A stretch of 64,000 nt of DNA from Chara braunii (GCA_003427395.1 BFEA01000013.1:403326-467325), one strand, 5' to 3'; shown: positions 2,263 through 24,893, counted from the first letter of the stretch. The notes: generated from the sequence alone by a model not told the origin. Program-made: numbers and translations.

Positions 2263-3595
2263 TGTCGGGGAAACCCCCCCTCTTAGTCGGGGACTGCCCG
2301 GCCCCCCGCCTTTTGCTCTTTACTTAGTGCCCGCCTTCTTTCAGTTTCTCCATCCCTGCGAGTTTGCAAGACCGCTCTCCATTTCACACCGGGCGAGAGC
2401 CCGTCTGGATGACCAGGTTTAACTGCTCGTTCTTTAGTTCGGAGCAGAAAAGCTTCGCCCTGCAGGTCGGTTAGGTGCCTTACCCCCACTCAGCGCGGTG
2501 CCAACGAACTCTAGGAACGGGGGATTCAAGTGAAAGCATGCACACACAAAACCGGAGATCTTGATTCCGCTTCTGCCAATCTTCAGGGTAAGTACTGTCA
2601 AAGCGAGCAGGCTTCTTCCTGGCTTTCACTCCCGTACGAAGCCAAAGAACTTTTTAGGATATTAGAGCACAAGTATCTTTGCACACACGAAGCCAGAGAA
2701 CCCGGTTTCTGCCAACAGTAAGAACGAAAACTGGTATTCCAGTCTGGCATAAGAAGCTGGTGTCTTCCCCCCCCTTCGCTCAAGCCCCCCCCCTTCTTGG
2801 TTTTCGTCGGCACCCTCCCGGAAAGCGGTACGGATTAGGAGTATTCGTCAAGCGATCTGCAAAAAAAAAGGAAAAGAAAAAAAGAAAAAAAGTATATCGC
2901 AAACAAGATCCGAAAGCAAAGGATCTGAATCCTCGCACAGGTTCACCGAGAACAAGACCCGAAAGCAAGAAGTCCAAATCCTCGACCCGATTTCCCGCGG
3001 ATACCACTCCCCACTCGCTCTGCCCAGGGCCTGCGATCATGCGAACGGTAACGGAAGGATTTTACCTGAGAGAATCACGGGAAACAAAAACATGCAGCGG
3101 AAAGAGGGACCAACAAGCGAACCCAAAAAGGGGCGGCCCGCTGATCGGGAGTTTGGGCCAGGCGGACAATCTAGACGACAGATCGAAAATCGAGCATGGC
3201 TATTCGTCGAGCGAGTGGCCAAAGCGATCGGCTTGCCGTCGATCAGGGACAGTCCTTTCTTCCCTTCTTCCCAACTTCTCTCTCCCCTCTCCCGTTCTCT
3301 CAGCCTCTCCCTCTCTTTCTCTCTTTCTCTCCGTCTCTCTTTCTTCCTTTCCCTCCCTTTCTCACAGCCCCTCCTGCGCTCTCGAATGAAGAGGTGACAT
3401 TAAGCTGTGTGGTGCACGAGCGCTAGCTCCTTCTGCCGCGCGCTTTCCCCTACCTTTCGTGCGCCCGAGCTCCCGGACTCACGGCGCAAAAAAAACTTCC
3501 CCCACCCCTCTCCTCTTCTCGGTGCTCTCCTCCCCTCTCTCGATCAACCCGCTTCAGTGTCGTTCATGCCCGTACTCGCCCCCTCCTCCTGACTA

Positions 3596-3632
<37 letters not shown>

Positions 3633-6533
3633 ACAGGGAGGTCCTCTCTATCCCTCCCCCGCCCTCTCTCTCTTTCTTTCCCTCTCTCTCCCTCTCTCCC
3701 TCTCTCTCTTTTTCTCGAACTTGTTTGGCTCTCTTCACGGCTCTTGCACCCGATGTCGCTTCCCGCAGAGGCCTCGAGGTCCCCTGTCGGCAGGTCTTGG
3801 TGTCGGACGCTAGTGCGCTCTGGTGGAGTAGCTTCAACTCCCTCTCCTTCTCGCCCTCTCTTTTCTCTGGCCAGCTCGCTCGTCGAGCGTCCCTCCCCGC
3901 GTGCGGAGTTCGCCACTTCGTGTCGTTTGGCCACGATCTCTTCTCTTCTTCCGCTCTGCTCTTCTCTATCTCTCCCTTTTTCTCTTCCCTGCGCCCGACC
4001 CTCTTCCTGGCACCAGCGTCTCGAACTTGTGCACAAAAACGCGAGCTCTCGAGCTCTCACGCTCTCCTACCCGTGCTCTCCTTCCCCAAAGGATCTCCCT
4101 CCACTCTCCCCTCTCCCTCGCCCACGCGGACGCAGCCGGGCCCACTCACCGTCGAACCTTCTCGCTCTTTCCCTCGCTTGTGGGCGAGCTGGCAAGCTTA
4201 CTAGCCCCTCTCGCGAGCGATGTGCGGCTGAACCGGTCCACATGCGTACGCCTAGAGAACCCTTCTTCGAAGTGGCGTGACGACCACCGAATCTACTCCG
4301 TGCGCGCTCCTTCTGCTCTCCTCCTCCCTTCCTACCTCTTCCCCATCCCTTCTCTCTTCCTCTCCTCATGCCCTCAGACCATCTCTGACATGTCGGGCGC
4401 TTCCTCGGGCGCAATGACGCAAGCCTGATCAACCCGTGCGCTAGAACGTAAACCAAATCCCCGTGCGTGCCCGTAGCTCCCTCGACACTAGCACTTCTCC
4501 TCTAGTTCCAGCCCCTGCGCTCTCCATCTCGGCCTCGCTTTCTCTTTTTCTCCTCGGAACGAGCGCAGACGAACTCTAACATCCTTCGTGCGAGGGAAAG
4601 AGTTTCTTCTTCGAAGTTCCCTCCGTTTCCCCTTCTAACGGTCCTCCTCACTTCGCGATTATCCCTTCCCTTCTTGTTAATCGGATTGCTCGCTTCGCCC
4701 AGCAGGAAAACCGACTATACTTCGGCCCAGTCCCCGCTCAGGTACATTAGCGGAGCTTACCTCCCGCCCTCGTCGCTTGCCCTTCCCTGCGAACCGCCTC
4801 CCTTTTCCCTTCCATGCTTCCCTTACTCCCAGGTCCTCCTCGCCCGCTTAATCCAGCCTGTTATGCCCGCAGGAGCTCCCACGCTCTGCCTGGCCAACTC
4901 CAATTTCAAGTCCCCGTTGATGCGCTCGCGATTGTCATCTCTTCTCCAATCCCATCGTTCGTTTTTCCCCTTTCCGGATCTTTTCTCCTTGCTCATAGTT
5001 GGGGACAAAAGCCCGCGCCGCTCTTCTTTTTTTTCACAATTATCAAGAACAGAATACCCGCCTCCTCTTTTCCCAACTGTTTCAGTCGCTGCCCCAGATT
5101 ATTTCCTCGCGTCCCTCCGTCTCCCTCTTTTTCGACTGGCCGTACTGCACCCTATCGAAGTCTCAGCCCGATACACACTGAATAAGGCTCGAGCCAAGGC
5201 TCCTCTTTTGTTTCTTGACCCCTCAGTCGGTTCCCTGCTCCTCATCCCCCTTTTTAGAGCATGTCTATCCGTGCCCAGTGTCTTTTACGGGAATCTACCC
5301 TGCTAGCAACGTGACTGCAATCATCTGCATTTTCCCATTTCAGTTCTATGTCTGCAAACCCTGGCTGCTGGCGCTTTCCGGCCTGCTCCTTTGTCGGAAT
5401 TCACATCATCGGTCGTTTGCCGCGCATGGTCTGCTCTGAGTTGGAGTCGCCCATCTCGTGCCCCCCCCCCGACCCGCTTTTGCGCTTAGCATTGGTTGTC
5501 TCTCTCCCTGCTCCTTAAAGCGTCAGCAAAAATTTAGAGAAGCAATTTCTCCCCCCCCCCCCCCGAAAATTTCTAAGTCTCTTGCATCCACACACCAATA
5601 CGCAAAAGCAAAGACAACCTATACCGTCCTCCTTCATACCTGTCTCTTATACACATCTAGATGTGTATAAGAGACAGGGCCCTCTCTCCTCCAGCAGGCT
5701 TGCTGCAGCGAAGGCCAAGACCCTCCTGGTCTTGGTATACCTTGTGCCCATGGAGACACCAAGTGCCAGGTATCACCTCCCTCTTCCCTCTCCCTANAAA
5801 ATTTCTAAGTCTCTTGCATCCACACACCAATACGCAAAAGCAAAGACAACCTACACCGTCCTCCTTCATACTGTGGCCCTTACGGGAAGTCCAGATCCCT
5901 TTGCCGCTGTTTTCGATTGACCGACCGCAGCCGACACGTCCAGGTACCCGCCCTCTTTTCGGTCAGCGCGCCATATCCCAAGCCAGTCTACGCCCCAACT
6001 ATGAGAAGCCTCAGCTGCCGATTTTTGAAACCACGACTTTTTTCAGAAATCGGAGCATTCTCACGTGATTGTCGTAGCGGAATAGCCTCGGCCTTATTTC
6101 GCGACAAGGGCCATTACGTCGAACCTGATCTTTCAGTACCGTCTTCTTGGCCAAGTGAGAGCAAACCCCACCACGTGCACCCGTGGTAGCCCGGCGGTCA
6201 TACGTAACCGAGGTCTAGCGCCTTCACTGGTTCTCCGTTTTAGGTCCGACCAAGGCCCATTCCGATGTACATCCTTCGCCCTGTATTTCCAGATTTTGAC
6301 ACCCCAACTCCGATCTTTTATGATCCGCCCGAGCCCACTTGCGACCAAGTTTTGGATCCTCACTTCAGCCAGCCGAAGGGTTAGTACGAAGACCCAGACG
6401 CCCGAGGACATCCACAAACGCCATATCCATATGCACTCATACGTCAAAACCAAGCAAAAACTGCAAAAAAAAAGGGAAAAAATATTTTTTATGTCAAAGC
6501 AAAACCCTTCGGCCGTTAGACAGCCGCCCGACA
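2263..6533 (-). repeat. 3' LTR of the nested gypsy element
   Basis: Colinear direct repeat of 20643-24889. Lacks about 200 bp present in the other copy (~22965-23180). Contains adapter-associated artefact sequence at 5640-5870. Confidence 0.95.
5640..5677. other. Complete Nextera mate-pair junction adapter; assembly artefact
   Basis: Exact CTGTCTCTTATACACATCTAGATGTGTATAAGAGACAG, followed by ~120 bp absent from the sister LTR, an N, and a re-read of 5566-5639. Confidence 0.97.
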
Positions 6534-6555
6534 ACCAGCCCACACCCCATTTCTC
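6534..6555 (-). promoter_or_regulatory. Polypurine tract (PPT) candidate
   Basis: Minus strand reads GAGAAATGGGGTGTGGGCTGGT immediately before the 3' LTR; G-rich but imperfect. Confidence 0.55.
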
Positions 6556-7653: not shown

Positions 7654-8958
7654 TCATTTCTGACACAGCTCTTCCCCAAGGGTCCCTCTTGCTCGGAAAA
7701 TTTTGAGACGAGCCCCCGCGATAGGGTCCCTTAGCCTGCTCCCGTCTAATTCCGTGAGCATATAAGCCCCCCCATCCAATCTCTTTAGGACCTTATAAGG
7801 CCCCATCCATCGGTTCACCAATTTCCGGCTCCAGGTCTTTTCTAGCGACGAATCGTACATCAGAATTAGGTCGTTAACCCCTATCGGCGCTTTTCTGACC
7901 CGCAAATTTTTGTCCCACCTATCTTTTTTTTTCACCCTTTTTCTCTCGACGTTCTCACTGGCCGCGGTTACCCTGGTATCCAAGTTTTCGGCTATCTGCT
8001 GTATCCTTGCCTCCGACAGTTCAGCCCTGAACATGTTGGTTTCCCACGAGACACTCGTCCAAGTGTCAATGTGGAATTCGATGGGTAGGGGACAGTGCCT
8101 ATCGAACCAAAGGGTGTAAGGAGGGTATTCCGGACTGAACTTGACTGTGATATTATCGGCCCAAACCGCGTACCGCAAGTATCTCGGCCACTGTTCCGCG
8201 CGGCCTTTGCACCTCTTCGCCAGAGCGTCCACTGCCTTTTCCAATAACGCCTTAACCTTTTGGCTCAAGAACTCGACGCCCCTATCCATGACTATTCTCC
8301 CGACACACCCGTACCGCATGATATATTCCAAGAGAAACTCACTTACCTCTTCTGTCGTCTTCTTCTTAATGGCCTTTGCCTCTACGAATCCCGTGAGGTC
8401 ATCCCGGGCGTTGATTATATACCGAAGTCCGCCGACCCCTTTCGGCATGGTCACTAAATCTACATGGACCTTCTCGCCCGGAACCGTGGGAAGCGACGAG
8501 ACTAAGGGGTCTTTGTACCGTACCGTCGCCCTCTTCTGGCAGGCTTCACATGTAGAGCAGTACTTTTCCACTTTCGTGTACTGTCCGTCCCACCAATAAA
8601 GCCTACGGACCTTGTCGAAAGTACCCTTCACCCCCCTATGACCTCCAACGACCCCATCGTGTAACTCCTCTATGACCGCCCTTCTCTCCTCCGGATCGCA
8701 CAATACCCTCATGGGTATCGCAAATTTGGTGGGTCTTTTGAAGAGATGGCCTCCCCGCATGCAATACCCCAGCGCCTCTTGCTGGATTCTTTCAGTCCCT
8801 GTTTCCCTACCGGCCAAGTACAGTCCTATGTCCCGGTACTTCCTGTCGTAGAGGTTTGCGAGAAAAGTCCTTGGGCCCCCTTCTTCCCCTCGGCTGCTCC
8901 CCGCCGTTTGCGCCCTATTAGCGGTGACTTTCATTATCCCCCCCTCGACCATTGTCAC
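7654..8958 (-). pseudogene. pol: Retrotransposon integrase (HHCC zinc finger, DDE core, GPY motif)
   Basis: LHDGVVGGHRG...CSTCEACQ, VHVDLV, VMDRG, WMGPYKV. The catalytic E region appears deleted. Confidence 0.93.
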
Positions 8959-8989
8959 TGCTTCCTCCTTAAGCCTAGGTAAGTCCTCC

Positions 8990-9511
8990 TCACGAATGGT
9001 CGGAGCTATAGTCGTAAAGCCTAATGTGTATCATCCATCGGGCAATGGTCGGATCGGTCAGTGATAAATCCTTTTGAAGGAATGGCGCTACTGCAGTTGG
9101 ATCTACTCTCAGGAGAAATCGTCGCCCGTATAGGTAATGACGGAAGGCCTTTAGGCAATGCAGGACCCCTAACACCTCCTTTTTGAATTGGCTGTAATTT
9201 CTCTCGGCGGGGTTCAATGTCCGGCTCTCGAATCGCAACGGTTTCTCTTTCCCTTCTCCGTCCTTTTGTGACAGGATGCCTCCTACTGAATGAGGTCCAG
9301 CGTCCGTGGACACTATGAACGGGCGACTCTCCTCGTCTTCGAAGAACGGAACTCCTAGGACCTCTCCACCTTCGCGGAACTCCTCCTTCAAAGCTTCCAT
9401 GGCCGCGACTTGTTCTTCTCCCCAAACCCATCCTTCTGATTTCCTGAGGAGTCTTCTTAGGGGTTCTGCTTTCTCTCCATAGGCTTTTATGAAGATCCTC
9501 CAGTAGCCCAC
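8990..9511 (-). pseudogene. pol: RT thumb and Ty3-type RNase H
   Basis: GYWRIFIK, STDAGPHSVGGILSQ, NYSQFKKEVLG, FLLRVD, IARW. Confidence 0.93.
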
Positions 9512-9532
9512 AACCCCTAGAAACTGTCGGAC

Positions 9533-10400
9533 CTACGTTATGGATTTGAGCGGCGATGGCCAAGTCATCAACTTTACCAATTTCTCGGGGTCAGGCCTCC
9601 GCCCCTCCTTATCGCAAATAAACCTTAATATCTTGATGGAGGAAACTCCCCAACGACTCTTAGTCCCGCTTACCATGAGGTTGGCATCATCTAGTTTCTC
9701 GAGGATGTTCCTGACATCTCTCATGTGGTTGGCCACAAACCTTTTAACCCCCGGGAAAACCTCGGTCTCATCTCGCTCGACCGGCCCTTTTATCGGGAAG
9801 TCATCCAGGAAGACCTCCACCTTCTCCGGTATGAACTCCTTGAGGACCGCGATCATGGCCCTTTGGAACATTGCTACCCCATTCGTCCAACCCATCGGTA
9901 CTACCATCATTTGAACCAGCCCTAAAGGCGTATGCATGGCGGTCATGTGCCTGTCCCGGTAATCTAAGGGAATTTCATCATACCCTGAGAAGAGATCGCA
10001 GATAGAGTATATTGAGCGGCTTGCCGATCCTTCCGCTAGCAAGTCGGCCTCAGGTATAGACCCCACATTTCTTATGGTGACCGCATTGGTCCTCTGGAGG
10101 TTCTGAATCCATCTCAGTTTGTTGCTACCCCCCTTCCTCATAAAGAACTACTTATTGGAGTAGGCACTCTCGCAAGGCTCCGCGACAAACGTCCTTATCT
10201 TTTCCTTGATAAAGACCACTATCTCCTCTTTCTCCTTTTGAGCGTACTTCGACTAAGGCCTATCCTTCCAAGGCATGTGCGGGACCATGTGGATCTGTGC
10301 CGGCTTAGCGTACCTTGGGTCGATCCTCCCTCTCTCCAAGTCATCAAAGGCAATGGCCTTATCGCACCCCCTTAGGGTCATTGCTATTAGCCCCTTCTCT
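9533..10400 (-). pseudogene. pol: Reverse transcriptase (gypsy)
   Basis: CDLFSGYDEI, PMGWTNG, FLDDF; the upstream part is disrupted by stops. Confidence 0.94.
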
Positions 10401-10899
10401 TCCTCCGTGAGGTTCCCATCTCCTATATCCATTTTGCGGCCGTTATCCTTTGCCCTTCCGTCTCTTTCCTCTTCCGAATGATATCGGCTATCTCCTCTTC
10501 CGATATTGTAGCTTCCCCCGTTCTATCCCGGATGATTGCGGCATGTTTTACTTTTTCCGCCACGGTTTTATGTTTCTTGACTCCGCCGGCTAGGGGGATA
10601 CCTCCAAAAAAGACACACTCACGCATCCACCGAACTCCTCCTCCTCGTCCTCCTTCTCGTACCCCATACCATTAATTAGAATCCTATCCCCCACGTCCTC
10701 GACCTCCAATTGGTCGCTCTTGGGTCCCCTATCTGTCAAAGGCACCTCCTCCTGACGGACTCGGCACACCCTCGACTGACTCACCTTGCGTCTAGCAATG
10801 CTGGTCCGGTTACGTTCGTCTTGCGCGTCTACGGTCTTCAGGATCACTCGAATTTCATCGGGACTTTGTATCGAGAGGGTCTGATTCCCATCCGGCAAA

Positions 10900-11200
10900 T
10901 CAACCGTGGGTGCGTGTACTGTGCTCAGCCAGGTCCTCCTGAGGATCAATTCGGAGGAGCACTCTTATCGGGACCGTGGTCTCTACGCCAGCAACCTCGA
11001 TCACGGGGCTATGACACACCCCTTCCGCCGGTTGCAGCTTGTTATCGGCCACCACCATTGACATTGAGACCCCTCGATCTATCTCCAAGCCCAGCTCCCG
11101 TGCGATGGAGTCCCTACAAACCGTAGACTTGGGCCCGTTGTCTACTAGAGCCCTCATCTTCTTCCCACTTACTACCGCCTGGAACTGACAACTACCTAAC
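10900..11200 (-). pseudogene. pol: Aspartic protease
   Basis: MRALVDNG active-site-like motif; downstream ILxR motif in a shifted frame. Confidence 0.8.
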
Positions 11201-11654
11201 ACATTTAATTTCTTAGCCTCTTCTATCGAGAAGAAGTTGGCAGGTAGTTCCTCCATGGTAATGCGGGAGGCCTGTACTTCTTCCTTGGCTGGACCCTCCA
11301 CCGGCACCGTGGGTCCCCCTACGATCGGGACTCTTACCTTCCTTGTGATGCTTAGGAGCTCCTCCTTGGCGCTTTTGCTCGCGGCTAGATATTCCAAAAG
11401 TGTGCACTGCATAGGTTGCATCAGGGTTCTCCTAAGGGGTGCTACCGTGTCTATCTCATCTAGAGTGCACTTCATTTCGAACTTTATGAACCCCCTTTTC
11501 TTAGGCGATTTTGGCGAGGTGGGCTCTTCGTTCTTTTCTTCCACCGCTTTCGCATCGGCCATAGGCTGGTCATTGTCGCCGCTTCTCACTTCCGTTCCTT
11601 CCGGCACGCTTGCTTGGTTCTCGGACGTCTCGGTCCCGACCTGCGTCCTCACCC

Positions 11655-13814
11655 TTAGGCAGGGCCTCTCTTCCTCGGGCTGGTTCTATGAACTTGATGC
11701 TTGACACTGGGGGTTCCCTTGGACAACCCTCCCGGTGACTCCACCATTTGAATGTGAGTAGTGTTGGAGGAGCTTACGACTTTCGGTTTCTTCCCCAGTC
11801 TAGCCTCCTGAAGGGCTACTCTGTTGTCCACGTTCACTTTCATTGATGGGTAAAAGGAGACCGCCTCTTCGCAATCTTCCCACACAACCCGTTTGTTCTC
11901 ATTAAGCTTGACCACCCCCAACCTTAAGGCCTCCGTGAGATAAGGGCCGTCCCTTTTGATGTGATTTTCTTCATTGCAGTAGACACACCCGCTTCGAGCT
12001 TGGGGATTGTTGGGGCGCGGACCCCCTTGTGTGGCCGCCGCTAGGGGTGCAGGCGGAGCCGGCGGTGGTGGTGCTGGTGGTGGTGGCGCTTTAACCTCCG
12101 GTCGCGGCCCAATGGCCCTTTCTTGAGGGGAGTCTCCCCACCTTCCATCCCTAGCATCCTTCCAATGGGAACCCCCCCAATCGGAACCACGATTCCCCCC
12201 TATCTCCCGGTCGTTCCTCCAACCTCCTTGGCCACTTGATTCACTCCTCCATCCGGTCGGCCGTTCTCCCAACCGGGGAACCGGCGGACCAGGGGGCGGT
12301 CTATCGCTCCCCCTTGGACCATCGCTCTGCGTGCCTCGCATGTTGCGGAGTGTCATGTCTAAGGTCTCCTTCATGTATTCCCTCACGTTTACTCCTCCTC
12401 CTGTGAAAACCACCTCCGCCACTTTTTCGAAATCGGCGGAATCCCTCGGGGCCTTTCAAGGACCTCTTTCCGTTTCTCCTCGGGCAGGTGCAACATGAAC
12501 ATCACGCACCTATCCACTTCAGACAGCATCTCCCTATCCACTAGGGCTTGGGACAGGCGTTTGAACCTTCAGGTGAAGGCCACCAAGCTTTCCCGCTCCC
12601 CCTTTGTAATTCGTCGCAAGCCTTCCACGGTCGGGATCAGGTCATCACAGGCGAAAGTCTGCAGTAGGCTCGCCCTGAAGGTCCTCCACCGCCCGTCTGA
12701 GGGGTAGATAGCCCGGATCGCGGTGTCTAACTCGGGGTCCGAGTGCTGGATGAAATAGTCGATCCACTCCCTTTCGGAGAATCTCTTCCGGTAAGCGTAA
12801 CTTTCTCATTTCTCCACGAACCCAGTCACATCTCGTCCGTCGAAGAAAAGTGCCTCCAGACCCAGGTTGACGTCATAGTAAGGGACTCGTCTGTCGTCGT
12901 ATCGGCGAAAATCGGGATCCTCCATTGGTCCATCGATTGTCGGGTCGTACGGCTTGTACCATGAGGGATCCGGCTCCTCTACCCGGCCCCGAGGTCTCGG
13001 TGGTTCCCAGGGGTCTTCCCCGTAGCGGCCCCGCTCATCCGGCCAATCCGCCTCCCACCGAGCGTGGCCCGACCCTCTTAAGCTTCTTCAGGCCTCCACC
13101 CCTTGACTCCTGCCCGTCATCTCGCCGGGAGCCCATGCAGCATCCGCTTCTCTTACGGCCCATCTCCGTGGCCTACTGCCAGCCTCCGCCGGCCTCTTGT
13201 CTCTAAGGCCCCTTCTACTCGGTCCCCCTTCCTCTTCTCTCCGGGGTGGTCGGTACCCCCCCCTATCTCTTGGAAATTCTAAGGCTTCTCCCATTCTTGC
13301 GCCCGGTGAATCCCCCCACCGAGATTCTATAGGAAGGTCCCTCGAGCCCTCGATCGCTCCTTTCCGCGCAGGCATTCGCATCTCGGTACCAGTTCTCGGT
13401 ACCAGTTCTCAGTCCCACTAAGGCCTGTCTTTCACCTGTGACAGCCTCCGGTACCCTTTCGACCCATCTCCGCGGCCCGCCGCCGACCTCTGCTGACCTC
13501 CCCTCCCTCAGGTCCCTCCTGTCCTGACACTCCTCTTCCTCCCTCCTAAGTGATCGATACCCCTGTCTATCTCCAGGAAATCCCCGCGCTTCTTCTAACC
13601 TTGCTTCCGCATTCATTAGGTGAGCCCAACGGGACTCCATCGGAACGCCTCTCGCGGCTTCGGCGACCCCTTCGTTTACCGGCACCCGCGGCCCCACATC
13701 CCTGTGCACTCGCACTTCCGTGCCAGCCCTTTGCCCCTCCGAGGCTTGTCTCTCCCCCGGAGCCATTTCCGGACCCACCTCGGCCCTATCTAGCGTCTCC
13801 GCCCCTTCTGTCAT
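11655..13814 (-). pseudogene. gag: Gag of the nested element (fragmented)
   Basis: Degenerate zinc knuckle CVYCNEENHIKRDG. FFDGRDVTGF capsid-like motif near 12830. Candidate ATG at 13814. Confidence 0.8.
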
Positions 13815-13904
13815 TTCTTCTCTATCCCCCTTCTTTCAGTGGCTTCCGGCGGACTTGAGAGACCAGCCTCCACTTCACTCTCCATGCACCCCTATTGGCA
13901 ATTT

Positions 13905-14794
13905 CTAGTCGCTTCCCTCACTATCGCCCGTGTTACTTCCCGGCTCATCCTTCTCACTATTGTCCCCGTTATCTTCCGAGTTCTTCTCCTCCTTCGATCC
14001 CCCCTTCTCCTCACTAGAATCCTCGTCAGTACCTTCCCCTTCCGACTCCTGGCTGGTCACCGTCCACCAGGAATCCCTTCGTTTCCTCTCCTCGTTGGCG
14101 GCCAACGCAAGATTCACGATCTCAAGGTCCGAGACGCCCCTAATCCCCTCTTGCGCGCACCTCCTTATCAGATCTCGGTCCACATCACCCGCCTGCCCGG
14201 AGAACAGGGGCTTGATAAACTCCCCAACGCGTGCCCACCACTCAAAGTCGGTGTCCTTTCTCGACTCCCAGCACTGGGTGAACAGTTTGTGGCCCCCTTC
14301 TTCACCCAGAGGGAATTTTTCTATCACTTGACCCCTCAATCAGACTCTCCTCACGGTCTCGTCGTAAGCGTAGAGTAGTCAATAGGCCCAGGTAGGAATG
14401 GTCCAAGTTCTCCCGTGGGCTGCCCTCGGGACTTCCGTCCTCCCTCGGTATTCTACCTGGTCGATCACAAGGTCCCCGGTGCCAACTCTTCTTAATCTTT
14501 GCACTCGTTCTAGGGCTCTTTCGGCGATGCCTAGAGGATCTTTCCCTTCCGCTAATTCAGTTGCGAAGATTAGCCGAGCGTCAGGGGACAAAAATATTTC
14601 CGCCTTTCTCGTGCAACTATTCCCCTCGGATGCTACTGAGAACCTGACCACTGTCTCCTGCTCGTAGATTTTGAAGAACTCGGTAGTTACCTCTCCTTCT
14701 CCTCTAACTTTCGGAGAGTCACTCCATATCTCCCTCCCCACGTCAAAACCCTATCCAAGGTACCGTAAGGGTCCCCCCTTTCGTATCTAATCAT
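13905..14794 (-). pseudogene. Accessory ORF, family 2 paralog, with acidic tail
   Basis: Track ORFs 14379-14741 and 13905-14339 are in frame across two TGA codons. Motifs IFLSPDA, EVPR, IPTWAY, HKLFTQCW. ATG at 14794 is out of frame by a frameshift. Confidence 0.65.
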
Positions 14795-14801
14795 AGGAGC
14801 A

Positions 14802-15278
14802 TCACCTCACGCCTGCCAACCTCAGGGCGGCCTCGACCAATGAATCCTTGCACTTAGCACGACCGGCCTCTCTGTCCCCTCTCAGAGTTTGGCGCAAAAC
14901 CTCCTCGTATTCGCCCGTTCTATCCCAAAATCGGGTCTGCACAAGGTGTGTCCTAGATGTCAGCGGCGTTCCTAGATACCTAGGATCCTCCTCGAACTTT
15001 CTTTCTACTTCCAGCAAAGGCTCCCTCCAAGTCCTAGAGAATCTCACGCCACTCGCGTCTCTAATGTGGAATGAAAAGGTAGCTAGCATGGTCCAACTTC
15101 TCTTTTTCCACAAGGCCATCCTTCAGACTTCCACTAGAAATTTTGTCTCGGCGCGGACTATGCGGTCCTCTCCCAATTCCGGGTTAAGCTCGGCACCCCC
15201 CTCGATCCGAACCTCGCTACCGTCCTCGTAGGTCTCTAATTCCCAACGAATCCTATTGGAGACGAACGAGGCTCTCAT
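14802..15278 (-). pseudogene. Accessory ORF (~158 codons, one internal TGA); possible distant family 2 member
   Basis: ATG at 15278 lies 4 nt after the previous stop and is in frame with track ORF 14802-15119. Confidence 0.55.
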
Positions 15279-15282
15279 CCCC

Positions 15283-16210
15283 TCACCACGAGAGAAGATC
15301 TATAGTGACCTTGTCGAGGATAGCGATCGTGGCCGTCTCAAGTAGCTTGATCCTGGCTAAGGACCCTGGCCTAGCCCTCCTCTCTTCTTCCCAACACAGA
15401 GCAAGGAACCGGTGAACTTCCTCCCTTACGCTATCCAACCCCACAAGCTCCTCAAGGTCCGACTCGGTCATCCCTTAACTTTCGTCGACGACACGCAATT
15501 GCTATCCGAATTGAGTCAGAGGGGTCCAACCCCGCTAGCTCTCCCTCGGAGATCTTACCTAAGTATCTCCACGATATTGTAGACTCCCTCGCGTGTCGAC
15601 CCCACCCTTCAAAGGCGTAACCCAGGTCCTCTAGCGTCGACCAATCGTGTCTACAGGAGTCCCGAAAACACCAAGTTAACAAGGTGTGAAGGTCCGATCC
15701 CGTGAACCTGAACTGACTTAAGATGGAAACCCGTCTTCCTACCGCCCTTTTGACAACCTCGGAGGGGTAAACTCGCTCAAAAATGAAACAGGGGACCTCC
15801 ACAAGCTCGCTGGAGAGGAACCGCGGTATCTCTTTCAAACCCCCGTAGGTCACTAGATATACCTCGTCGCACCCTTCGTGAGGTCTCATCTCCTCTACTA
15901 ACTCCCCTAGCCGGCCCCTCACAGCTCGAGCGTCCCAGAGAGGGTCCTGCCCAATCCGTAAGCTACGCGCTATCTCAACAAGCCCCTCCCTCGAGAGGAA
16001 TATTCGGGTTTCTCCCACTACAACCTCCCCCTGGCGACTCACCGCAAATCGTATGAACGCCTTACCGCGCCGGATCTCCCCTTCTTCTCGCAGGAGAGTC
16101 CTTGTCAGTTCAGTCAACGAGGCCCTAGGTAGAGTGACACTGATAACCTCCCCGGTATCCTCTACGGGCTCTATGGACGCCCAAAGAGTTCTCGGAATCC
16201 TCCTTATCAT
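15283..16210 (-). CDS. Accessory ORF, family 2 paralog (252 aa, plus an overlapping or frameshifted 62-aa tail)
   Basis: IFLSREG, EIPR, VPCFIF, LHTLLTWCF. Confidence 0.7.
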
Positions 16211-16287
16211 CGGCCCTCGAAACCCCTCCGGTTAGCCACCTGCTCTTCTCCGAAGAGGCGGGCGTACGGAACGTCCGCGATGAGAGA

Positions 16288-16935
16288 TCAGAGTCCCTCA
16301 AACTCCCTCAATCTTCCGAATATGGCGGATAGCTCACTCCTTGGGGGAATTCCCGCGTCCACGCACCGAGTATAAAGCGAGAACAAACCCCTAGCCCGTA
16401 CCCCGGATTCTCGAGCCGTCCTAAGCACCGCTACTACCTTCTCCTCCGGGTCTCTTAGGAAAGAGCTGGCCACAAACTGGGGCAGATTAGTGTGGAGGAC
16501 CCCGGACGAGCGAGGGACCTCGCCGGGCTCAGCGAAGGGCAGTAGCGTCCACGATTCGAAAGTCCCTTCCTCATAGTCAGCTAACACTAGGTCGTTTGCC
16601 AACTGCCTTGCGAACTCACGGTATTCAAAATGCGTCAATTGTTCGGTTACCAAGCCCCTCCAGACTTCGGCCCACACCTCTTCGTTAAAAAAAATTGTAG
16701 CCCGAATCTCCAGGAAACGACCGAGGTCGGGTGAGCCTCCTCTCTCCACACCTTCCTTCCAAGTGAGCCTTCGAGCTCGAACCCACACGTAGGCCCCTTC
16801 TCGGATCAGTCCCCCTTTCTCAACGCTCATCCAATAAGGGGTTACTTGAGGGTCACCTGGAACCAAAACCTTCTCGGTGTCACTGACCTCTATTGATTCC
16901 ACCACCCCGTTTTCACTGAGCTCGAACTTCACCAT
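16288..16935 (-). CDS. Accessory ORF, family 2 paralog (215 aa)
   Basis: LGRFLEIRATIFFNEEVW, EVPRSS, LFSLYTRCVDAGIPPR; open frame with ATG. Confidence 0.78.
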   Translation of the reverse strand: MVKFELSENGVVESIEVSDTEKVLVPGDPQVTPYWMSVEKGGLIREGAYVWVRARRLTWKEGVERGGSPDLGRFLEIRATIFFNEEVWAEVWRGLVTEQLTHFEYREFARQLANDLVLADYEEGTFESWTLLPFAEPGEVPRSSGVLHTNLPQFVASSFLRDPEEKVVAVLRTARESGVRARGLFSLYTRCVDAGIPPRSELSAIFGRLREFEGL

Positions 16936-17599
16936 CTGCTATCGTCGTTCTAAAGGCTGACCTGCGATATTTTTCAGGAGAGAGAGTGAAGGGCTTTTCT
17001 AGGGACCCTAGCCTCCGGAAAATACCCCAGAGTTTTTTGCGCGGCGGAATTCCCTGATCGATGCAGTGCGTATACAGCACCCACAGGGCCCTGAAGGTAA
17101 GCCCCAAACCCCTACCCCTCTCTAGAAGACACACTATCCTTCCCTCGTTTGCCCTAGGGAACATGTAAGACGGCACCCTCACAGTTAACGGGTAACTTGA
17201 CCTTGGAAGCTCTCTCTCCCTCGCGAACCTCTCCCTTTCCACAGACAAGAATGCAAGTCGCTCTCTAACCTTACTTATCCACTCCCCTCTCACTTCTCTC
17301 GCCTCGCGTAACAACTTTTCCATCCCACCCCCTTGTCCCAGAATTAGGGGTACTACGAGCTTCGCCCAAGCCTCAGGTGCTACGAAAATTATCGCTGTTA
17401 CTTCAAGACTCCGCCCAAGACCTTGGCCTTCTACCTCTTTGGACTCTACCCACACGAATTCCCCACTAACCGTGGACTTCCCTCCTTCTATCCTTTTCCA
17501 ATCAGGAACTTCCCCGTTGCTAGGGACCAGCCTAAGGGCCTCGCGGTCTTCTAAGGAGGACTCTACGAAGCATCCCTGCTGTCTATCATGGAACACCAT
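16913..17599 (-). CDS. Accessory ORF, family 2 paralog (228 aa)
   Basis: LGRSLEVTAIIFVAPEAW, ELPRSS, VPSYMF, LWVLYTHCIDQGIPPR; open frame with ATG. Confidence 0.78.
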   Translation of the reverse strand: MVFHDRQQGCFVESSLEDREALRLVPSNGEVPDWKRIEGGKSTVSGEFVWVESKEVEGQGLGRSLEVTAIIFVAPEAWAKLVVPLILGQGGGMEKLLREAREVRGEWISKVRERLAFLSVERERFARERELPRSSYPLTVRVPSYMFPRANEGRIVCLLERGRGLGLTFRALWVLYTHCIDQGIPPRKKLWGIFRRLGSLEKPFTLSPEKYRRSAFRTTIADGEVRAQ

Positions 17600-17603
17600 T
17601 CAT

Positions 17604-18343
17604 TTAGAAGATCCTTTGTGGCACCCCGAAGACTCTTTGGTATCCGTAGTCCCTTCCTCCCTCGCGGTCTTGGGTAGACTCCCTAAAGATCCCGGCACGA
17701 ATCCTACACGCCTTGATCCCGTATGGCACCGGGTTATCCACGCAATAGTTGTAGTACCAATGGAGCGACCTAAGGGAGAGCTGCCACCCCCTTTCTCGTA
17801 CTATGGACTGCACAACCCTGTCGTACCACTTCTCCTTCCCGCTCACCCTTCGGAAAACGAACGATGGGAAAATGGCTCTGACGCACCCTGTGGCGCGAGG
17901 GTATTCTTCGTCTCGCACGCAGGTCACCCTTACCTCAATGGGCGGGCTGTGTCTAAGGGGTTCAGCCTGAAAGATCTGCCTCAAAATTGGACCCGCTCGT
18001 GCCTCCCAATGATCCGTACAGTACCACCACAGGTCCAAATGTGTGACGTAATCGATCCAGGCCTCCTTACTTAAGTAGACAGTTCCTTCCGCACGGATCA
18101 CCGTTCGCCTGGGTCTCTTCCCGTTCTGGGGCCTGTTCCGGGACCACATGTCCCCCTCCCAAGTTCCTATCGCGAAACGAGCCCAAAGAAAAAACCCTCG
18201 TTCTAGCTCTAACCCCCTCTTGCGACCGGCTAGATACCTCTCCGTGCGGTGGTCTAAGGGACGCTGAAGAACTCCCTGTCTTTGCTCAAATCCGCCTTCT
18301 CTATCCGAACTCCTTCCTTAGTACCCTCGACGATCCTAACCAT
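17604..18343 (-). pseudogene. Accessory ORF, family 2 paralog (N-terminus disrupted)
   Basis: VYLSKEAW, EYPRAT, FPSFVF, LHWYYNYCVD. The original start is probably ATG 18343 (MVRIVEG..DREFFSVP), which overlaps the upstream ORF end. Confidence 0.68.
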
Positions 18344-18701
18344 TCCCTTGGACTATCTCTTCTATGATTTGAACCAGCGCCCTCCAATCGTGCGACCCGT
18401 CTAGGAAAGCGTTCGGAATAGTGGGGACAGGCCTACCCCCTCGTGAAAACGTCCTACACCCCAACAAGTAGAAGTAGTTAATCTCGTAAGCCCCCAGCAA
18501 TTGCCTCTCAAGTTGTGCATGACCGATCGCTTCCTCCCAGCTATCCAAATATCATGCCTCCCTATTAACACCCTCTTCTACGTACAAGGCTATGTCGAAG
18601 TGGCCGGTCCATCAGTAGAAGGTATAGCACCACACGTTTACCCCGCCTCGATCACCTACAGTAATCCCTGCGGGCTCAAACTCCAAAGGCCTCAAGCTCA
18701 T
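18336..18701 (-). pseudogene. Accessory ORF, family 1 copy 2 (~121 codons, two internal TGA)
   Basis: My translation: MSLRPLEF..VNVWCYTFY*WTGHFDIALYVEEG..YFYLLGCRTFSRGGRPVPTIPNAFLDGS. Confidence 0.72.
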
Positions 18702-19055
18702 GTATTCGCCGCTCCCACCACTCTCTCCACAATCCCAACTAGCACTTTCTATTCATCCGACCCATCGAGATAAGCGTCCGGAATTACCGGCGTCGGGCGA
18801 CCACCTCTGGGGTAGGTTCGATATCCTAGAGAGTAGAAATACTTGTACCCATAACCCGTTAATTCCTCACAAGTACCGCGGGAATGTCCTATCGCCTCTT
18901 CCCAATAGAAGGAAGTCCTCTCCTTGATCTTGTCCCTCCTCTACATAGACACCTACATCAAAGTCACCCGTCCATAGTCGAAAGGAGTAAAACCACACGT
19001 CAACACTACCGTACGTACACACACTAATCCATTCTGGAACGACTTCTAGGCTCAT
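18698..19055 (-). pseudogene. Accessory ORF, family 1 copy 1 (~118 codons, frameshift and stop)
   Basis: MSLEVVPE..VDVWFYSFRLWTGDFDVGVYVEEG../YFYSLGYRTYPRGGRPTPVIPDAYLDGS. Its TGA overlaps the next ATG (ATGA, 18698-18701). Confidence 0.72.
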
Positions 19056-20621
19056 GGAGTATAATCAAAGGAAAATTTCTTAAGTTCCTATTTCCTTTTG
19101 GCCACCCGAGAGACCACCTCTATCCCGCAAGGAAAAGAAGCCTGTGACCTCAGAAGGATCAAATGGACCAGAGAAGGAACGTCGTCTCACTCGGCTACCT
19201 TCCTGTCCTCCCCCGCTGAGAGACTCCTCCCCACTCCCGGCCGAGAGACTAGCCGCGGACACAGGTTATCCCCGAGGAAGGGTGGCAACCCCCTCCCCGG
19301 AGTCGGACCGAAGTCACACACCCGGGCCCTATGTCTCCCACTGAACCGACCTCTAGTCCTAAGTTAGCCTATCCGGCACCACGCCTCTACTCGGCCCACC
19401 TCAAGCGTGGAATTACCCGGGTCCCAGGACAAGATCCACCTATGTATCAGAAATCACTAGCCTATCTACTCCCTCCCCATTCTCCATATCGTGAACTCTT
19501 CGCAATTCGTCATCTTCTCCCTTTTTCCGCCTCCTGCTGCCTATTTTCTCTCTTGGAATCACCGGAAGATCGGGGAATTAGAAAAAGGGGTGGGAAGAGC
19601 GGAGCTTTAGGAAGAGGCTCTCAGGTGAGGTAGATAAACATACGTACCTTAAGTCTTCAATATTCGTTATCATAGTCGCAATAGTCCCCCAGATCCGAGT
19701 CCGACAAATTGGCTAGACACCGGTCCACCCAGGAGTCGGTCTCCGATCCCTCGTCCAAGGTCCCCCAAGTACCCCCTTCTTCTCTAACGCCCTCGCTAAG
19801 ACGGGTAGGTGAGCCTCTCTCTCCCCCTCGCCCCGGCACCCGTAACACCACTCTCCTCTCCCCCAAGTCCCGAACCAGTCCCGTTTGAGAGTCCCGCTCC
19901 CCTGTGGGAGTAGGAACCGTCGTCAGCCCCCGCGGGTCGAGAACCGAAGCCCCTAACCCCTCTCTAGACACCCTCTCTCGTGCGGGACTTTGCCCCCGGG
20001 TAGGCGCCCTCCACAACCCGTGCGGATCAAGAATACTTGGCGACCCCCTCGGGTCCCAAATAGACAGCGCCCCCGGACCCTCTCGGACCCCTCTCTCCTC
20101 TCTTTCCCTCCCCCTCTCTCTTTCTCCCCCTTGAGCAGACCCCCTTACGCTATTTTCCCGGACTATTATTCTTCCCACCCTTTTGCCGTTCTTCACCCTC
20201 ATTCAGCCCCCTCAAGCAAACTGTGCTCCCCCTTCGTTTTCAACTTTTCATAAATAAACACTCGTAAAAATCAAGCACTCAAAAGGAACTGACCTGTTTA
20301 CCCCTTCGAAGGCCGGAAGTGGGAGCCAAGATCGCAAGCGGGTCGGAGTGGACCTGCAAAAGCCAAGGAGACGAACCCAACACCCAAAACCCCTCGCACC
20401 GGACAAAACCCAACAACAAACCCCACCCCAATAAACCCCTCGCCGACATCACCGTGATCACCGTGGAGAATCCGCTGGAGACTACCTTGAAGACGTGTGT
20501 CGAAGAGCTCGATGCCAAAATTTTGAAGAACACCGCAAACTCACTCCACCGCTGCATGTCACGCTGGTCCTCCCTCACCCCGTAGTTGTTGAGCCGGCCG
20601 CGGCCGCGGGAGAAATGCTCA

Positions 20622-20639
20622 TCCCTGGCAACGGCGCCA
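20622..20639 (-). promoter_or_regulatory. Primer-binding site complementary to plant tRNA-Asp 3' end
   Basis: Minus strand TGGCGCCGTTGCCAGGGA, 3 nt inside the 5' LTR; one mismatch to the Athila-type PBS TGGCGCCGTTGCCGGGGA. Confidence 0.88.
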
Positions 20640-20642
20640 CTT

Positions 20643-23600
20643 TGTCGGGGTAACCCCCCCCCTTAGTCGGCGATTGCCCGGCCCCCCGCCTTTTGCTCTT
20701 TACTTAGTGCCCCCCTTCTTTCAGTTTCTCCATCCCTGCGAGTTTGCAAGACCGCTCTCCGTTTCACACCGGGCGAGAGCCCGTCCAGATGACCAGTTTT
20801 AACTGCTCGTCCTTTAGTTCTGAGCTTTGCCCTGCAGGTCGGTTAGGTGCCTTACCCCCACTCAGAGCGGTGCCAACGAACTCTAGGAACGGGGGATTCA
20901 AGTGAAAGCATGCACACACAAAACCGGAGATCTTGATTCAGCTTCTGCCAATCTTCAGGGTAAGTACTGTCAAAGCGAGCATGCTTCTTCCTGGCTTTCA
21001 CTCCCGTACGAAGCCAAAGAACTTTTTAGGATATTAGAGCACAAGCATCTTTGCACACACGAAGCCAGAGAACCCGGTTTCTACCAACAGTAAGAACGAA
21101 AACTGGTATTCCAGTCTGGCAAAAAAAGCAGGTGTCTTCCCCCCCCTTCGCTCGAGCCCCCCCCCCTTCTTGGTTTTCGTCGGCACCCTCCCGAAAAGCG
21201 GTACGGATCAGGAGTATTCGTCAAGCGATCTGCAAAAAAAAGGAAAAGAAAAAAAGAAAAAAATATATCGCAAACAAGATCCGAAAGCAAGGGATCTGAA
21301 TCCTCGCACTGGTTCACCGCGAACAAGACCCGAAAGCAAAAGTCCAAATCCTCGACCCGACTTCCCGCGGATACCACTCCCCACTCGCTCTGCCCAGGGC
21401 CTGCGATCATGCGAACGGTAGTGGAAGGATTTTACCTGAGAGAATCACGGGAAACAAAAACATGCAGCAGAAAGAGGGACCGGCAAGCGAACCCAAAAAG
21501 GGGCGACCCGCTGATCGGGAGTTTGGGCCAGGCGGACAGTCTAGATGACAGACCGGAGATCAAGCATGGCTATCCGTCGGGCGAGTGGCCGAAGCGATCG
21601 GCTTGCCGCCGATCAGGGACAGTCCTTTCTTCCCTTCTTCCCAACTTCTCTCTCCCCTCTCCCGTTCTCTCAGCCTCTCCCTCTCTTTCTCTCTTTCCTT
21701 CCGTCTCTCTTTCTTCCTTTCCCTCCCTTTCTCACAGCCCCTCCTGCGCTCTCGAATGAAGAGGTGACATTAAGCTGTGTGGTGCACGAGCGCTAGCTCC
21801 TTCTGCCACGTGCTTTCCCCTACCTTTCATGCGCCCGAGCTCCCGGACTCACTGCGCAAAAAAAACTTCCCCCACCCCTCTCCTCTTCTCGGTGCTCTCC
21901 TCCCCTCGCTCGAGCGACCCGCTTCAGTGTCGTTCATGCCCGTACTTGCCCCCCCCTCCTGACTACGCCCCCCCCCTCTTGCGCTCTCCCAGCCTCTCAG
22001 ACAGGGAGGTCCTCTCTATCCCTCCCTCGCCCTCTCTCTCTTTTTTTCCCTCTCTCTCCCTCTCTCCCTCTCTCTCTTTTTCTCGAACTTGTTTGGCTCT
22101 CTTCACGGCTCTTCCACCCGATGTCGCTTCCCGCGGAGGCCTCGAGGTCCCCTGTCGGCAGGTCCTGGCGCCGGACGCTGGTGCGCTCTGGTGGAGTAGC
22201 TTGAACTCCCTCTCCTTTTCGCCCTCTCTTTCCTCTGGCCAGCTCGCTCGTCGAGCGCCCCTCCCCGCGTGCGGAGTTCGCCACTTCGTGTCGTTTGGCC
22301 ACGATCTCCAGCCTCTTCTTCCGCTCTGCTCTTCTCTATCTCTCTCTTTTTCTCTTCCCTGCGCCCGACCCTCTTCCTGGCGCCAGCGTCTCGAACTTGT
22401 GCATAAAAACGCGAGCGCTCGAGCTCTCGCGCTCTCCTACCCCGTGCTCTCCTTCCCCAAAGGATCTCCCTCCACTCTCCCCTCTCCCTCGCCCACGAGG
22501 ACGCAGCCGGGCCCACTCACCGGCGAACCTTCTCGCTCTTTCCCTCGCTTGTGGGCGAGCTGGCTAGCTTACTAGCCCCTCTCGTGAGCGACGTGCGGCT
22601 GAACTGGTCCGCATGCGTACGCCCAAAGAACCCTTCTTCGACGGGGCATGACGACCGCCAAATCTACTCAGTGCGCGCTTCTTCTTCTCTCCTCCTCCCT
22701 TCCTACCTCTTCCCCATCCCTTCTCTCTTCGTCTCCTCACGCCCTCATACCATCTCTTACATGTCGGGCGCTTCCTCGGGCGCAACGGCGCAAGCCAGAT
22801 CAACCCGTGCGTTAGAGAACTTCAACCAAATCCTCGTGCGAGCCCGTAGCTCCCTCGACACTAGCACTTCTCCTCTAGTCCTAGCCCCTGCACTCTCCCC
22901 CTCGGCCTCTCTTTCTCTTTTTCTCCCCGGAACGAGCGCAGACGAACTCTAACATCCTTCGTGCGCATCCGTACTCGCACGCCCCCCTTTCACTCTCCTC
23001 TCCCCTTCCTTTTATACCTTTTTCTCTCTCGTACATCGATCCTTCCTTCCTCTTTTCTGCCAATCTGCGTTCCCTTCTCTTCGATTCATGACGCTCTCCT
23101 TTCCTCTTCATTCTCGCGCCAACAGTCTTGCCAAATTTTCGATTTTTTCGCAAAGTTCCTGTCACTTTTCCATTCTCCTGCTTCTTCTTCGAAGTTCCCT
23201 CCGTTTTTCCCCCGAACGCTCCTCCTCACTTCGCGATCTTCCCTTCCCTTCTTGTTAATCGGATTGCTCGCTTCGCCCTGCAGGAAAACCGACTGTACTT
23301 CGGCCCAGTCCCCGCCCAAGTACATTACCGAGAGCTTACCTCCCGCCCTCGTCGCTTGCCCTTCCCTACGAACCGCCTCCCTTTTCCCTTCCATGCTTCC
23401 TTTACTCCCAGGTCCTCCTCGCCCGCCTAATCCAGCTTGTTATGCCCGCAGGAGCTCCCACACTCTGCCTGGCCAACTCCAATTTCAAGCCCCCGCTGAT
23501 GCGCTCGCGATTGTCATCTCTTCTCCAATCCCATCGTTCGTTTTCCCCCTTTTCGGATCTTTTCTCCTTGCTTATAGTCGGGAACAAAAGCCCGCGCCGC

Positions 23601-24889
23601 TCTTCTTTTTTTTCACAGTTATCAAGAACAAAATACCCGCCTCCTCTTTTCCCAACTGTTTCAGTCGCTGCCCCAGATTATTTCCTCGCGTCCCTCCGTC
23701 TCCCACTTTTTTGACTGGCCGTACTGCACCCTACCGAAGTCTCAGCCCGATACACACTGGACAAGGCTCGAGCCAAGGCTCCTCTTTTCTTTCTTGACCC
23801 CTCAGTCGGTCCCGGACGGTTGATGCCATGGCTTGCCTAGCTTCACCGCTCCTCATCCCCCTTTTTAGAGCATGTCTATCTGTGCCCAGTGTCTTTTACG
23901 GGAACCTACCCTGCTAGCAACGTGACTTCAATCGTCTTCATTTTCCCATTTCAGTTTTATGTCTGCAAACACCGGCTGCTGGCGCTTTCCGGCCTGCTCT
24001 TCTGTCGGAATTCACTTCATCCGTCTTTTGCCCCGCATGGTCTGCTCTGCATTGGAGTCGCCCATCTCGTGACCCCCCCCCCGCTTTTGCGCTTAGCATT
24101 GGTTGTCTCTCTCCCTGCTCGTTAAAGTGTCAGCAAAAATTTAGAGAAGCAATTTCTTCCTCCCCCCCCCCCGAAAATTTCTAAGTCTCTTGCATCCACA
24201 CACCAATACGCAAAAGCAAAGACAACCTATACCGTCCTCCTTCATACTGTGGCCCTCACGCGAAGTCCAGATCCCTTTGCCGATGTTTTCGATCGACCGA
24301 CCGCAGCCGACACGTCCAGGTACCCGCCCCCTTTTCGGTCAGCGCGCCATATCCCAAATCAGGCTACACCCCAACTATGAGAAGCCTCAGCTGCCGATTT
24401 TTGAAACCACGACTTTTTTCGCGATTGTCGCAGTGGAATAGCCTCGGCCTTACTTCACGATAAGGGCCGTTACGTCCAACCTGATCTTTCAGTACCGTTT
24501 TCCTAGCCAGGTGAGAGCAAACCCCACCACGTGCACCCGTGGTAGCTCGGCGGTCATACGTAACCGAGGTCTAGCGCCTTCACTGGTTCTCCATTTTAGG
24601 TCCGACCAAGGCCCATTCCGATGTACATCCTTCGCCCCGTATTTTCAGATTTTGACACCGAAACTCCGATCTTTTATGATCCGCCCGAGCCCACTTGCGA
24701 CCATGTTTTGGATCCTCACTTCAGCCAGCCGAAGGCTTAGTACGAAGACCCGGACGCCCGAGGACATCCACAAACGCCATATCCGCATGCACTCAGACGT
24801 CAAAACCAAGCAAAAAATGCAAAAAAATAAGGAAAAAATATTTTTTATTTCAAAGCAAAACCCTTCGGGTGTTAGAGAGCCGCCCGACA
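20643..24889 (-). repeat. 5' LTR of the nested gypsy element
   Basis: Direct repeat of 2263-6533, adjacent to the PBS, TG...CA termini. Confidence 0.95.
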
Positions 24890-24893
24890 ACGG

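Follow-up and report, generated by a model that had tools for sequence, protein, structure and literature searches.

A conserved array of small genes upstream of gag in a giant Ty3/gypsy retrotransposon lineage of Chara braunii

Introduction

Long terminal repeat (LTR) retrotransposons of plants can carry additional open reading frames (aORFs) besides gag and pol, and those reviewed include ORF1 of Ogre upstream of gag, the env-like genes of Athila and Bagy2, and the antisense ORFs of Grande, RIRE2, and Retand (PMC7264820). In each element shown in Figure 1 of that review, the aORF follows pol and precedes the 3′ LTR and may read in either orientation; this location is called the most frequent one (PMC7264820). 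In this study, we analyzed 64,000 nucleotides of Chara braunii DNA (GCA_003427395.1 BFEA01000013.1:403326-467325; hereafter the window, meaning this whole stretch), in which a 22.6-kb Ty3/gypsy element on the minus strand contains a cassette of small ORFs (positions 19055 to 13905) between its putative primer-binding site (PBS) and gag. Like plant Ty3/gypsy elements with aORFs, this element is of giant size and has extra coding sequence that is conserved throughout the family and has no homologue beyond the elements. What sets it apart from the known aORF elements is nine to ten sense ORFs upstream of gag, two internal paralog families among them, and operon-like junctions that give a pararetrovirus-like polycistronic layout. 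Ogre, compared here by description only, has a single ORF1 between the 5′ LTR and gag, whereas the Chara element has ten ORFs with no Pfam or profile relative outside Chara. The described LTR retrotransposons with extra genes that we found carry a single one, or in some cases a few, and the Chara lineage keeps ten under selection. In our literature searches, we found neither this Chara family nor an array of many genes 5′ of gag described.

Plant pararetroviruses (Caulimoviridae) have fused or short junctions between ORFs and upstream ORFs cleared of AUG, and their pregenomic RNA is translated by leaky scanning, as in rice tungro bacilliform virus (RTBV) and badnaviruses, or by reinitiation assisted by the transactivator TAV, as in cauliflower mosaic virus (PMC5902531). 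The Chara element resembles them in that consecutive ORFs overlap slightly, share fused stop/start codons, or are separated by short spacers, its upstream accessory ORFs are depleted in AUG, and a long leader precedes the first ORF. By contrast, it has LTRs and an integrase, and its cassette proteins match no caulimovirid family in Pfam; compared with RTBV, its AUG clearance is partial rather than complete, and ten cistrons rather than two precede the polyprotein. The junction layout of Caulimoviridae was found at the DNA level in seven copies of the element, a single RNA across the ten ORFs being assumed. Judged from these features, the Chara element appears to work like a member of Caulimoviridae but is not one.

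Other systems are comparable in part. LTR retrotransposons of bdelloid rotifers contain, beside gag (ORF1) and pol (ORF2), an ORF3 of recognizable type, which is env-like or encodes a GDSL esterase or a DEDDy exonuclease (PMC5408684). They likewise represent LTR retrotransposons that acquired extra ORFs, but the ten ORFs in Chara are of no known type and several are paralogous. In green algae, bicistronic host mRNAs are translated by leaky scanning (PMC11291117). Those transcripts share with our case a host of the green lineage and more than one ORF per capped mRNA; however, they come from chlorophyte host genes, whereas a ten-cistron retrotransposon RNA of a charophyte is predicted here from DNA. 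Complex retroviruses (lentiviruses, deltaretroviruses, and spumaviruses) also have several small element-specific proteins besides Gag-Pol that are kept by selection and presumed to act in trans. In retroviruses, the accessory genes follow pol on its 3′ side and depend on multiply spliced mRNAs for expression, whereas the Chara genes lie 5′ of gag and the hint of splicing is limited to one donor-like motif.

Selection on the cassette ORFs

The cassette extends exactly from the first family-1 ATG to the stop codon of the last ORF before gag, starting approximately 1.6 kb downstream of the PBS. Minus-strand ORFs fill it end to end, nine in number, and with ORF0 upstream there are ten between the PBS and gag (Table 1). 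The initial annotation of this DNA had described about eight packed ORFs there, all on one strand; position, packing, and strand were as described, and the count was revised to nine in the range plus ORF0. In the window copy, the sense strand of the range has open frames of 259, 237, 228, 216, 144, 123, and 106 codons. The frames of at least 100 codons total 1313 codons, whereas 500 dinucleotide shuffles averaged 192 and never exceeded 669. Family-2 genes encode 215 to 295 amino acids (aa) and family-1 genes approximately 120.

The window copy was compared with six further full copies (L001–L003 and L005–L007, from GCA_003427395.1) and a 1.26-kb fragment (L004, from GCA_003427375.1). The ratio of nonsynonymous to synonymous substitution rates (dN/dS) was calculated pairwise between natural copies by the Nei–Gojobori method, in the frame of a copy open for the ORF in question and skipping codons with stops or indels, and medians are reported (Table 1). 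The nine cassette ORFs showed medians of 0.13 to 0.20, whereas the two other frames of the same alignments gave 0.8 to 2.7; the pseudo-dN/dS of the non-coding leader was 0.83. Each of the nine cassette ORFs has been kept by purifying selection at the protein level, with a strength close to that on gag. These pairwise values mix change during the active life of the lineage with decay after insertion, and dS was saturated for the most distant pairs; since post-insertion decay is included, the true constraint is, if anything, stronger. For ORF0, dN/dS was 0.33 in frame and 0.87 and 1.07 in the two other frames; it probably represents a tenth gene of the array, under weaker constraint. A dN/dS near 1, which the initial annotation had named as evidence against protein-level selection, was thus not observed for any cassette ORF.

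The stops and frameshifts were nearly all private to one copy. At these sites the other copies have sense codons, mostly CGA, TGG, or CAG, which fits the earlier proposal that several interruptions are TGA codons derived from CGA by deamination. Each ORF was fully open in one to five copies, so that at least one natural copy has it open; this check was run on natural copies. The private stops and the open natural copies together indicate that the ORFs were intact while the lineage transposed and decayed after insertion.

These data bear on the possibility that the ORFs are parts of a single N-terminal Gag extension broken by mutation, or chance frames in purine-rich DNA. The window copy is indeed decayed (its LTRs are ~94% alike), and purine-rich strands yield long chance frames, the antisense strand also having one of 292 codons. 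However, neighboring ORFs lie in different frames, nearly all seven copies share their stops and ATGs, and dN/dS is low in frame but about 1 or higher when the other frames are read. Moreover, the open-frame total lies above that of all 500 shuffles, and the antisense frame is not accompanied by a lowering of sense-strand dS. This explanation is contradicted by the selection, junction, and shuffle results, and we regard it as having practically no chance of being correct.

The antisense frame itself spans positions 17196 to 18071 on the plus strand, over F2_1 and F2_2, and was open over 173 to 292 codons in the six copies checked. It was rejected as a gene because dS of the sense strand was not lowered there, and base composition is its most likely source.

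Distribution of the array

The six full copies had 75 to 87% DNA identity to the window copy or were more distant, and all of them showed the same order: ORF0, F1a, F1b, F2_1, F2_2, F2_3, F2_4, x5a, c5, c6, gag, protease, reverse transcriptase (RT), RNase H, and integrase. In L005, the most divergent copy, the cassette proteins were 55 to 76% identical to those of the reference copies, compared with 81 to 88% for RT and ~78% for protease. A search of 1.84 billion representative proteins with a family-2 profile built from four members gave four matches, all Chara gene models that are pieces of the same element family. A word-based search with one of these four proteins gave ten matches, all C. 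braunii hypothetical proteins, and the three whose DNA was examined (L005–L007) were copies of this element. All relatives with a named source were from C. braunii, and no homologue outside Chara was detected by the profile search or in Pfam. The matched Chara proteins are chimeric gene models laid over element copies. In the seven full copies, the array is an integral, syntenic part of a giant gypsy lineage, and the repeat-rich Chara genome appears to be partly shaped by such giant elements.

The same searches speak to the possibility that the cassette is passenger DNA, that is, host or viral genes that an ancestor picked up once and that are conserved by recent descent or by a host function, with no role in the element cycle. 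Gene capture by LTR retrotransposons is known (PMC7264820), and no function could be assigned to the cassette. Captured genes are, however, typically present in one or few copies (PMC7264820), whereas the four profile matches and the ten word-search matches led back to this element family or to C. braunii. In addition, order and junctions are the same in subfamilies with saturated synonymous sites (dS ~1), which places the selection in the retrotransposition cycle rather than at a host locus. We consider the passenger explanation highly improbable.

In L003, an insertion of ~12 kb (L003:5951-18056) was observed within F2_1, and the gene model in it has a DUF659 domain, which is associated with hAT transposases. 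This insertion accounts for the chimeric Chara gene model P0001.

Paralog families and protein properties

The two family-1 proteins were clearly related: their C-terminal halves shared 57% identity (BLASTP, E 1e-19), their N-terminal halves aligned with E 7e-4, and the F1a and F1b profiles matched each other with a probability of 100% (hhalign, E 1e-48). This agrees with the two copies of ~120 aa with shared motifs that had been annotated. Family 2 was more diverged. F2_2 and F2_3 were 36% identical (BLASTP, E 3e-24; hhalign probability 99%), F2_1 matched F2_2, F2_3, and F2_4 with hhalign probabilities of 92 to 96%, F2_4 matched c6 with 97.6% (E 3e-12), and the hidden Markov models (HMMs) of the family matched one another. 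The "at least five" family-2 copies of the initial annotation thus proved to be exactly five detectable members, with the quoted motifs visible in the alignments; two further ORFs, x5a and c5, belong to neither family. No link of x5a, c5, or ORF0 to either family or to one another was seen in hhalign comparisons.

Paralog alignments were therefore significant by BLASTP, HMM, and profile-profile comparison, the opposite of the result that had been named as unfavorable. The paralogs have diverged to 20 to 36% aa identity, and no DNA-level repeat was detected within the cassette by a repeat finder or self-BLAST, as the earlier remark that the DNA is not visibly repetitive had implied. Together with the low in-frame dN/dS, this bears out the proposal of an old duplication under protein-level selection. 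When each cassette ORF was compared by hhalign with the gag, protease, RT, RNase H, and integrase profiles, probabilities did not exceed 4.4%, which rules out that the cassette genes are duplicated pieces of gag or pol. The array arose partly by ancient tandem duplication inside the element.

The cassette proteins are soluble, lack hydrophobic stretches strong enough to span a membrane, and have isoelectric points of 4.6 to 9.8. A word-based protein search with F2_2 and F1a gave no match, although its length window probably excluded the chimeric Chara models, and none of seven window ORFs had an exact counterpart in the protein collection. PDB sequence profiles yielded nothing at E up to 1 for either family. 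In the ESM Atlas feature search, F2_2 had no usable match and F1a scored at most 0.86, which is chance level. In the structural comparison that had been suggested, the top PDB match of Foldseek had an E of 0.13 and a template modeling (TM) score of 0.16, on models whose confidence is given below. The best result of a wide VIA-align search (Z 6.0), a helical hairpin of 50 residues resembling pentatricopeptide or tetratricopeptide repeats, was rejected because it lies within the stated background. A match to an already described retrotransposon accessory domain, which would have spoken for a known gene type, was not found in Pfam, profile, or PDB searches. Families 1 and 2 are new protein families without detectable relatives. 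As a low-confidence guess, the proteins might act in trans, in host interaction or counter-defense, RNA handling, or particle assembly; by analogy with accessory genes of other reverse-transcribing elements, we favor host interaction or RNA handling among these.

Junctions, AUG usage, and predicted translation

The stop/start geometry of the ORFs (Table 1) was conserved across the copies. The window copy deviates by an earlier, private TGA in F2_3 (16290-16288), which removes the last 27 codons. The F1a/F1b junction was kept in six of seven copies; in L005, an in-frame TAA ends F1a 5 nucleotides (nt) before the same ATG.

The cassette was poor in ATG, with a density of 6.7 to 7.6 per kb, compared with 3 to 6 in the leader and 17 to 20 in gag-pol. 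Internal Met made up 0.3 to 0.5% of cassette codons versus 2.5% in gag-pol, corresponding to 0 to 3 per cassette protein and 6 to 9 per half of gag. When synonymous codons were shuffled with protein sequence and codon usage held fixed, out-of-frame ATGs proved to be fewer than expected in the cassette (15 versus 22.7, P = 0.012; 5 versus 12.8, P = 0.001), whereas gag-pol showed no depletion (51 versus 48.9, P = 0.73). Seven of the 11 start codons have a pyrimidine at position −3.

The junctions and the AUG depletion recall plant pararetroviruses, and leaky scanning is known for host mRNAs of green algae; from this we infer scanning-dependent polycistronic translation. The ten ORFs and gag-pol would be translated from the unspliced genomic RNA; through leaky scanning, ribosomes would bypass start codons in weak context, and where stop and start overlap or lie close together they would re-initiate, reaching gag-pol last. 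The stop/start overlaps and the AUG clearance thereby predict many-cistron translation of one eukaryotic mRNA.

Between ORF0 and F1a lies a non-coding leader of ~600 nt, which is the best-conserved part of the element (87.7% mean pairwise identity, compared with 76% for the cassette ORFs and 84% for RT). Its minimum free energy of folding was not significant globally (z ~0), and therefore a large stable hairpin of the shunt type is not indicated. The leader could be a packaging, dimerization, or ribosome-landing signal. A few bases past the ORF0 stop, at 19650-19642 on the minus strand, five of six copies have AAG|GTACGT, a good 5′ splice-site consensus. This motif raises an alternative in the mode of complex retroviruses, in which this donor would be spliced to acceptors before single ORFs or gag, so that each protein, or at least Gag-Pol, would be made from its own spliced mRNA. 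The position of the motif directly past ORF0, followed by the highly conserved leader, recalls the retroviral arrangement of donor, packaging signal, and first gene, and ten cistrons are many for scanning alone. No acceptor matching the donor-like motif was found, however. Start codons are not preceded by a pyrimidine tract followed by AG; the sole tract, before F1a, is followed by an AG only within ATGAG. The motif also lies within a uniformly conserved stretch, and thus its conservation is unspecific, and splicing would leave unexplained the depletion of AUG in all frames and the ATGA-type overlaps. Both mechanisms could coexist. We regard splicing as the unlikely mode.

Taken jointly, a giant Chara-specific Ty3/gypsy accessory module with selected ORFs, predicted polycistronic expression, and conjectured trans-acting proteins is the reading that we consider likely. 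Several observations weigh against it. The donor-like motif described above leaves room for spliced mRNAs. The AUG clearance is partial, approximately 25 non-start ATGs remaining in 5.2 kb (~0.45 of expectation), and therefore leaky scanning on its own would probably supply gag-pol poorly after ten cistrons. The seven full copies sampled, each damaged somewhere, are a small sample of a probably large family. In Pfam searches with all window ORFs and with intact versions from the other copies, the cassette gave only noise (E >0.04), and AlphaFold2 models built from paralog and copy alignments had a mean predicted local distance difference test (pLDDT) score of 54 for F2_2 and 49 for F1a, too poor for fold assignment. 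Finally, the cassette dN resembles that of gag and protease, and therefore shows no sign of an arms race. The initial annotation had imagined an arsenal for anti-silencing or host interaction; with no fold, domain, or partner found, that idea received no direct support.

A more specific version of the accessory-module reading is that the ten accessory cistrons and gag-pol are expressed from one capped genomic RNA by operon-like leaky scanning and termination-reinitiation, and that one of the orphan proteins might act like TAV as a reinitiation or RNA-handling factor. We offer this version tentatively and hold it possible but doubtful. If true, no longer polycistronic translation unit would be known from a eukaryotic nuclear genome, and the lineage would be a missing organizational link between LTR retrotransposons and pararetroviruses. 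The array, with two internally duplicated orphan families, shows that LTR retrotransposons can build virus-like gene complements without becoming viruses.

Structure and setting of the element

Self-comparison of the window revealed a 4.25-kb direct repeat (2263-6535 versus 20643-24891, ~94% identity). Read on the minus strand, the LTRs start with TGTCGGG and finish with CCCCGACA, and a 4-bp target duplication, CCGT, is present at 24893-24890 and 2262-2259. The assignment to Ty3/gypsy follows from this LTR pair with TG...CA ends and duplication and from the Pfam order protease, RT, RNase H, and integrase from 11652 down to 7654. At the polypurine position before the 3′ LTR, the sequence is purine-rich with no clean tract. 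The window copy is an old, inactivated copy.

Table 1 Features of the element in the window. Positions are counted from the first letter of the window; dN/dS values are medians.
Feature	Position	Strand	Description	Start relative to preceding ORF	dN/dS	Evidence in copies or searches
Whole element	2263-24889	minus	Ty3/gypsy LTR retrotransposon, 22.6 kb			LTRs, TG..CA ends, target duplication, PBS-like 18-mer, pol order
5′ LTR	20643..24889	minus	4.25 kb, TG...CA ends			~94% identical to 2263-6535
PBS-like 18-mer	20622..20639	minus	TGGCGCCGTTGCCAGGGA, TGG-initiated, 3 nt past LTR			
ORF0	19657..20202	minus	Probable gene, 181 aa, Arg/Glu/Gly-rich, first ORF after PBS, intact; no internal Met		0.33	Open in window copy, L001, L002
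Leader	19056..19656	minus	Conserved, non-coding, ~600 nt, ORF0 to F1a			Mean pairwise identity 87.7%
F1a	18698..19055	minus	Family 1 copy 1, 119 aa in intact copies; here broken by a stop and a frameshift		0.15	Intact in L001, L003
F1b	18336..18701	minus	Family 1 copy 2, 121 aa; two in-frame TGA here	Overlaps F1a stop as ATGA (−4)	0.14	Intact in L002, L006, L007
F2_1	17604..18343	minus	Family 2 member 1, ~246 aa; frameshift near N-terminus here	Overlaps F1b stop, ATGGTTAG (−8)	0.19	
F2_2	16913..17599	minus	Family 2 member 2, 228 aa, uninterrupted in window copy	ATG 4 nt past F2_1 stop, TAA-ATGA-ATG (+4)	0.17	
F2_3	16207..16935	minus	Family 2 member 3, 242 aa at full length	Overlaps F2_2 by 23 nt	0.13	
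F2_4	15452..16210	minus	Family 2 member 4, 252 aa, intact here	Overlaps full-length F2_3 stop as ATGA (−4)	0.18	
x5a	15283..15471	minus	Singleton, 62 aa, intact here	Overlaps F2_4 by 20 nt	0.19	Open in 4/7 copies
c5	14802..15278	minus	Singleton, 158 aa; one TGA here	ATG 4 nt past x5a stop, TGA-GGGG-ATG (+4)	0.20	Intact in L001, L003, L006, L007
c6	13905..14794	minus	Family 2 member 5, ~295 aa with acidic Ser/Glu/Asp tail; in window copy interrupted by a frameshift and two TGA	ATG 7 nt past c5 stop (TGA, 7 nt, ATG)	0.14	
gag	11655..13885	minus	Arg/Glu-rich repeats, capsid-like core, degenerate zinc knuckle; several breaks in window copy	TAG of c6, 19 nt, ATG	0.16-0.21	
pol	7654..11652	minus	Protease, RT, RNase H, integrase (Ty3/gypsy order)		0.06-0.15 (protease 0.15; RNase H 0.11; RT and integrase 0.06)	Pfam Asp_protease_2, RVT_1, RT_RNaseH, Integrase_H2C2, rve
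217-nt repeat	6872-7088 and 7357-7573		Between integrase and 3′ LTR			78% alike
3′ LTR	2263..6535	minus	Assembly join with adapter sequence at 5640-5677 inside			
Second Ty3/gypsy element	1163-2262 and 24894 to ~30100	plus	gag, protease, RT, integrase			

The N-terminal third of gag consists of Arg/Glu-rich peptide repeats (13090-13835), which are under selection (dN/dS 0.21) and matched no Pfam family. Nextera transposase adapters stand back to back in the 3′ LTR (5640-5677, with an N at 5797) and also occur at window positions 14-32. Approximately 77 nt of the LTR are present on either side of the join, which is an assembly artifact and not biology, and this join accounts for the ORF translations "VSYTHLDVYKRQ" and "MCIRDS". 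Beyond its LTRs, the 22.6-kb element sits within the gag gene of the second, plus-strand Ty3/gypsy element, the halves of which flank the insertion.

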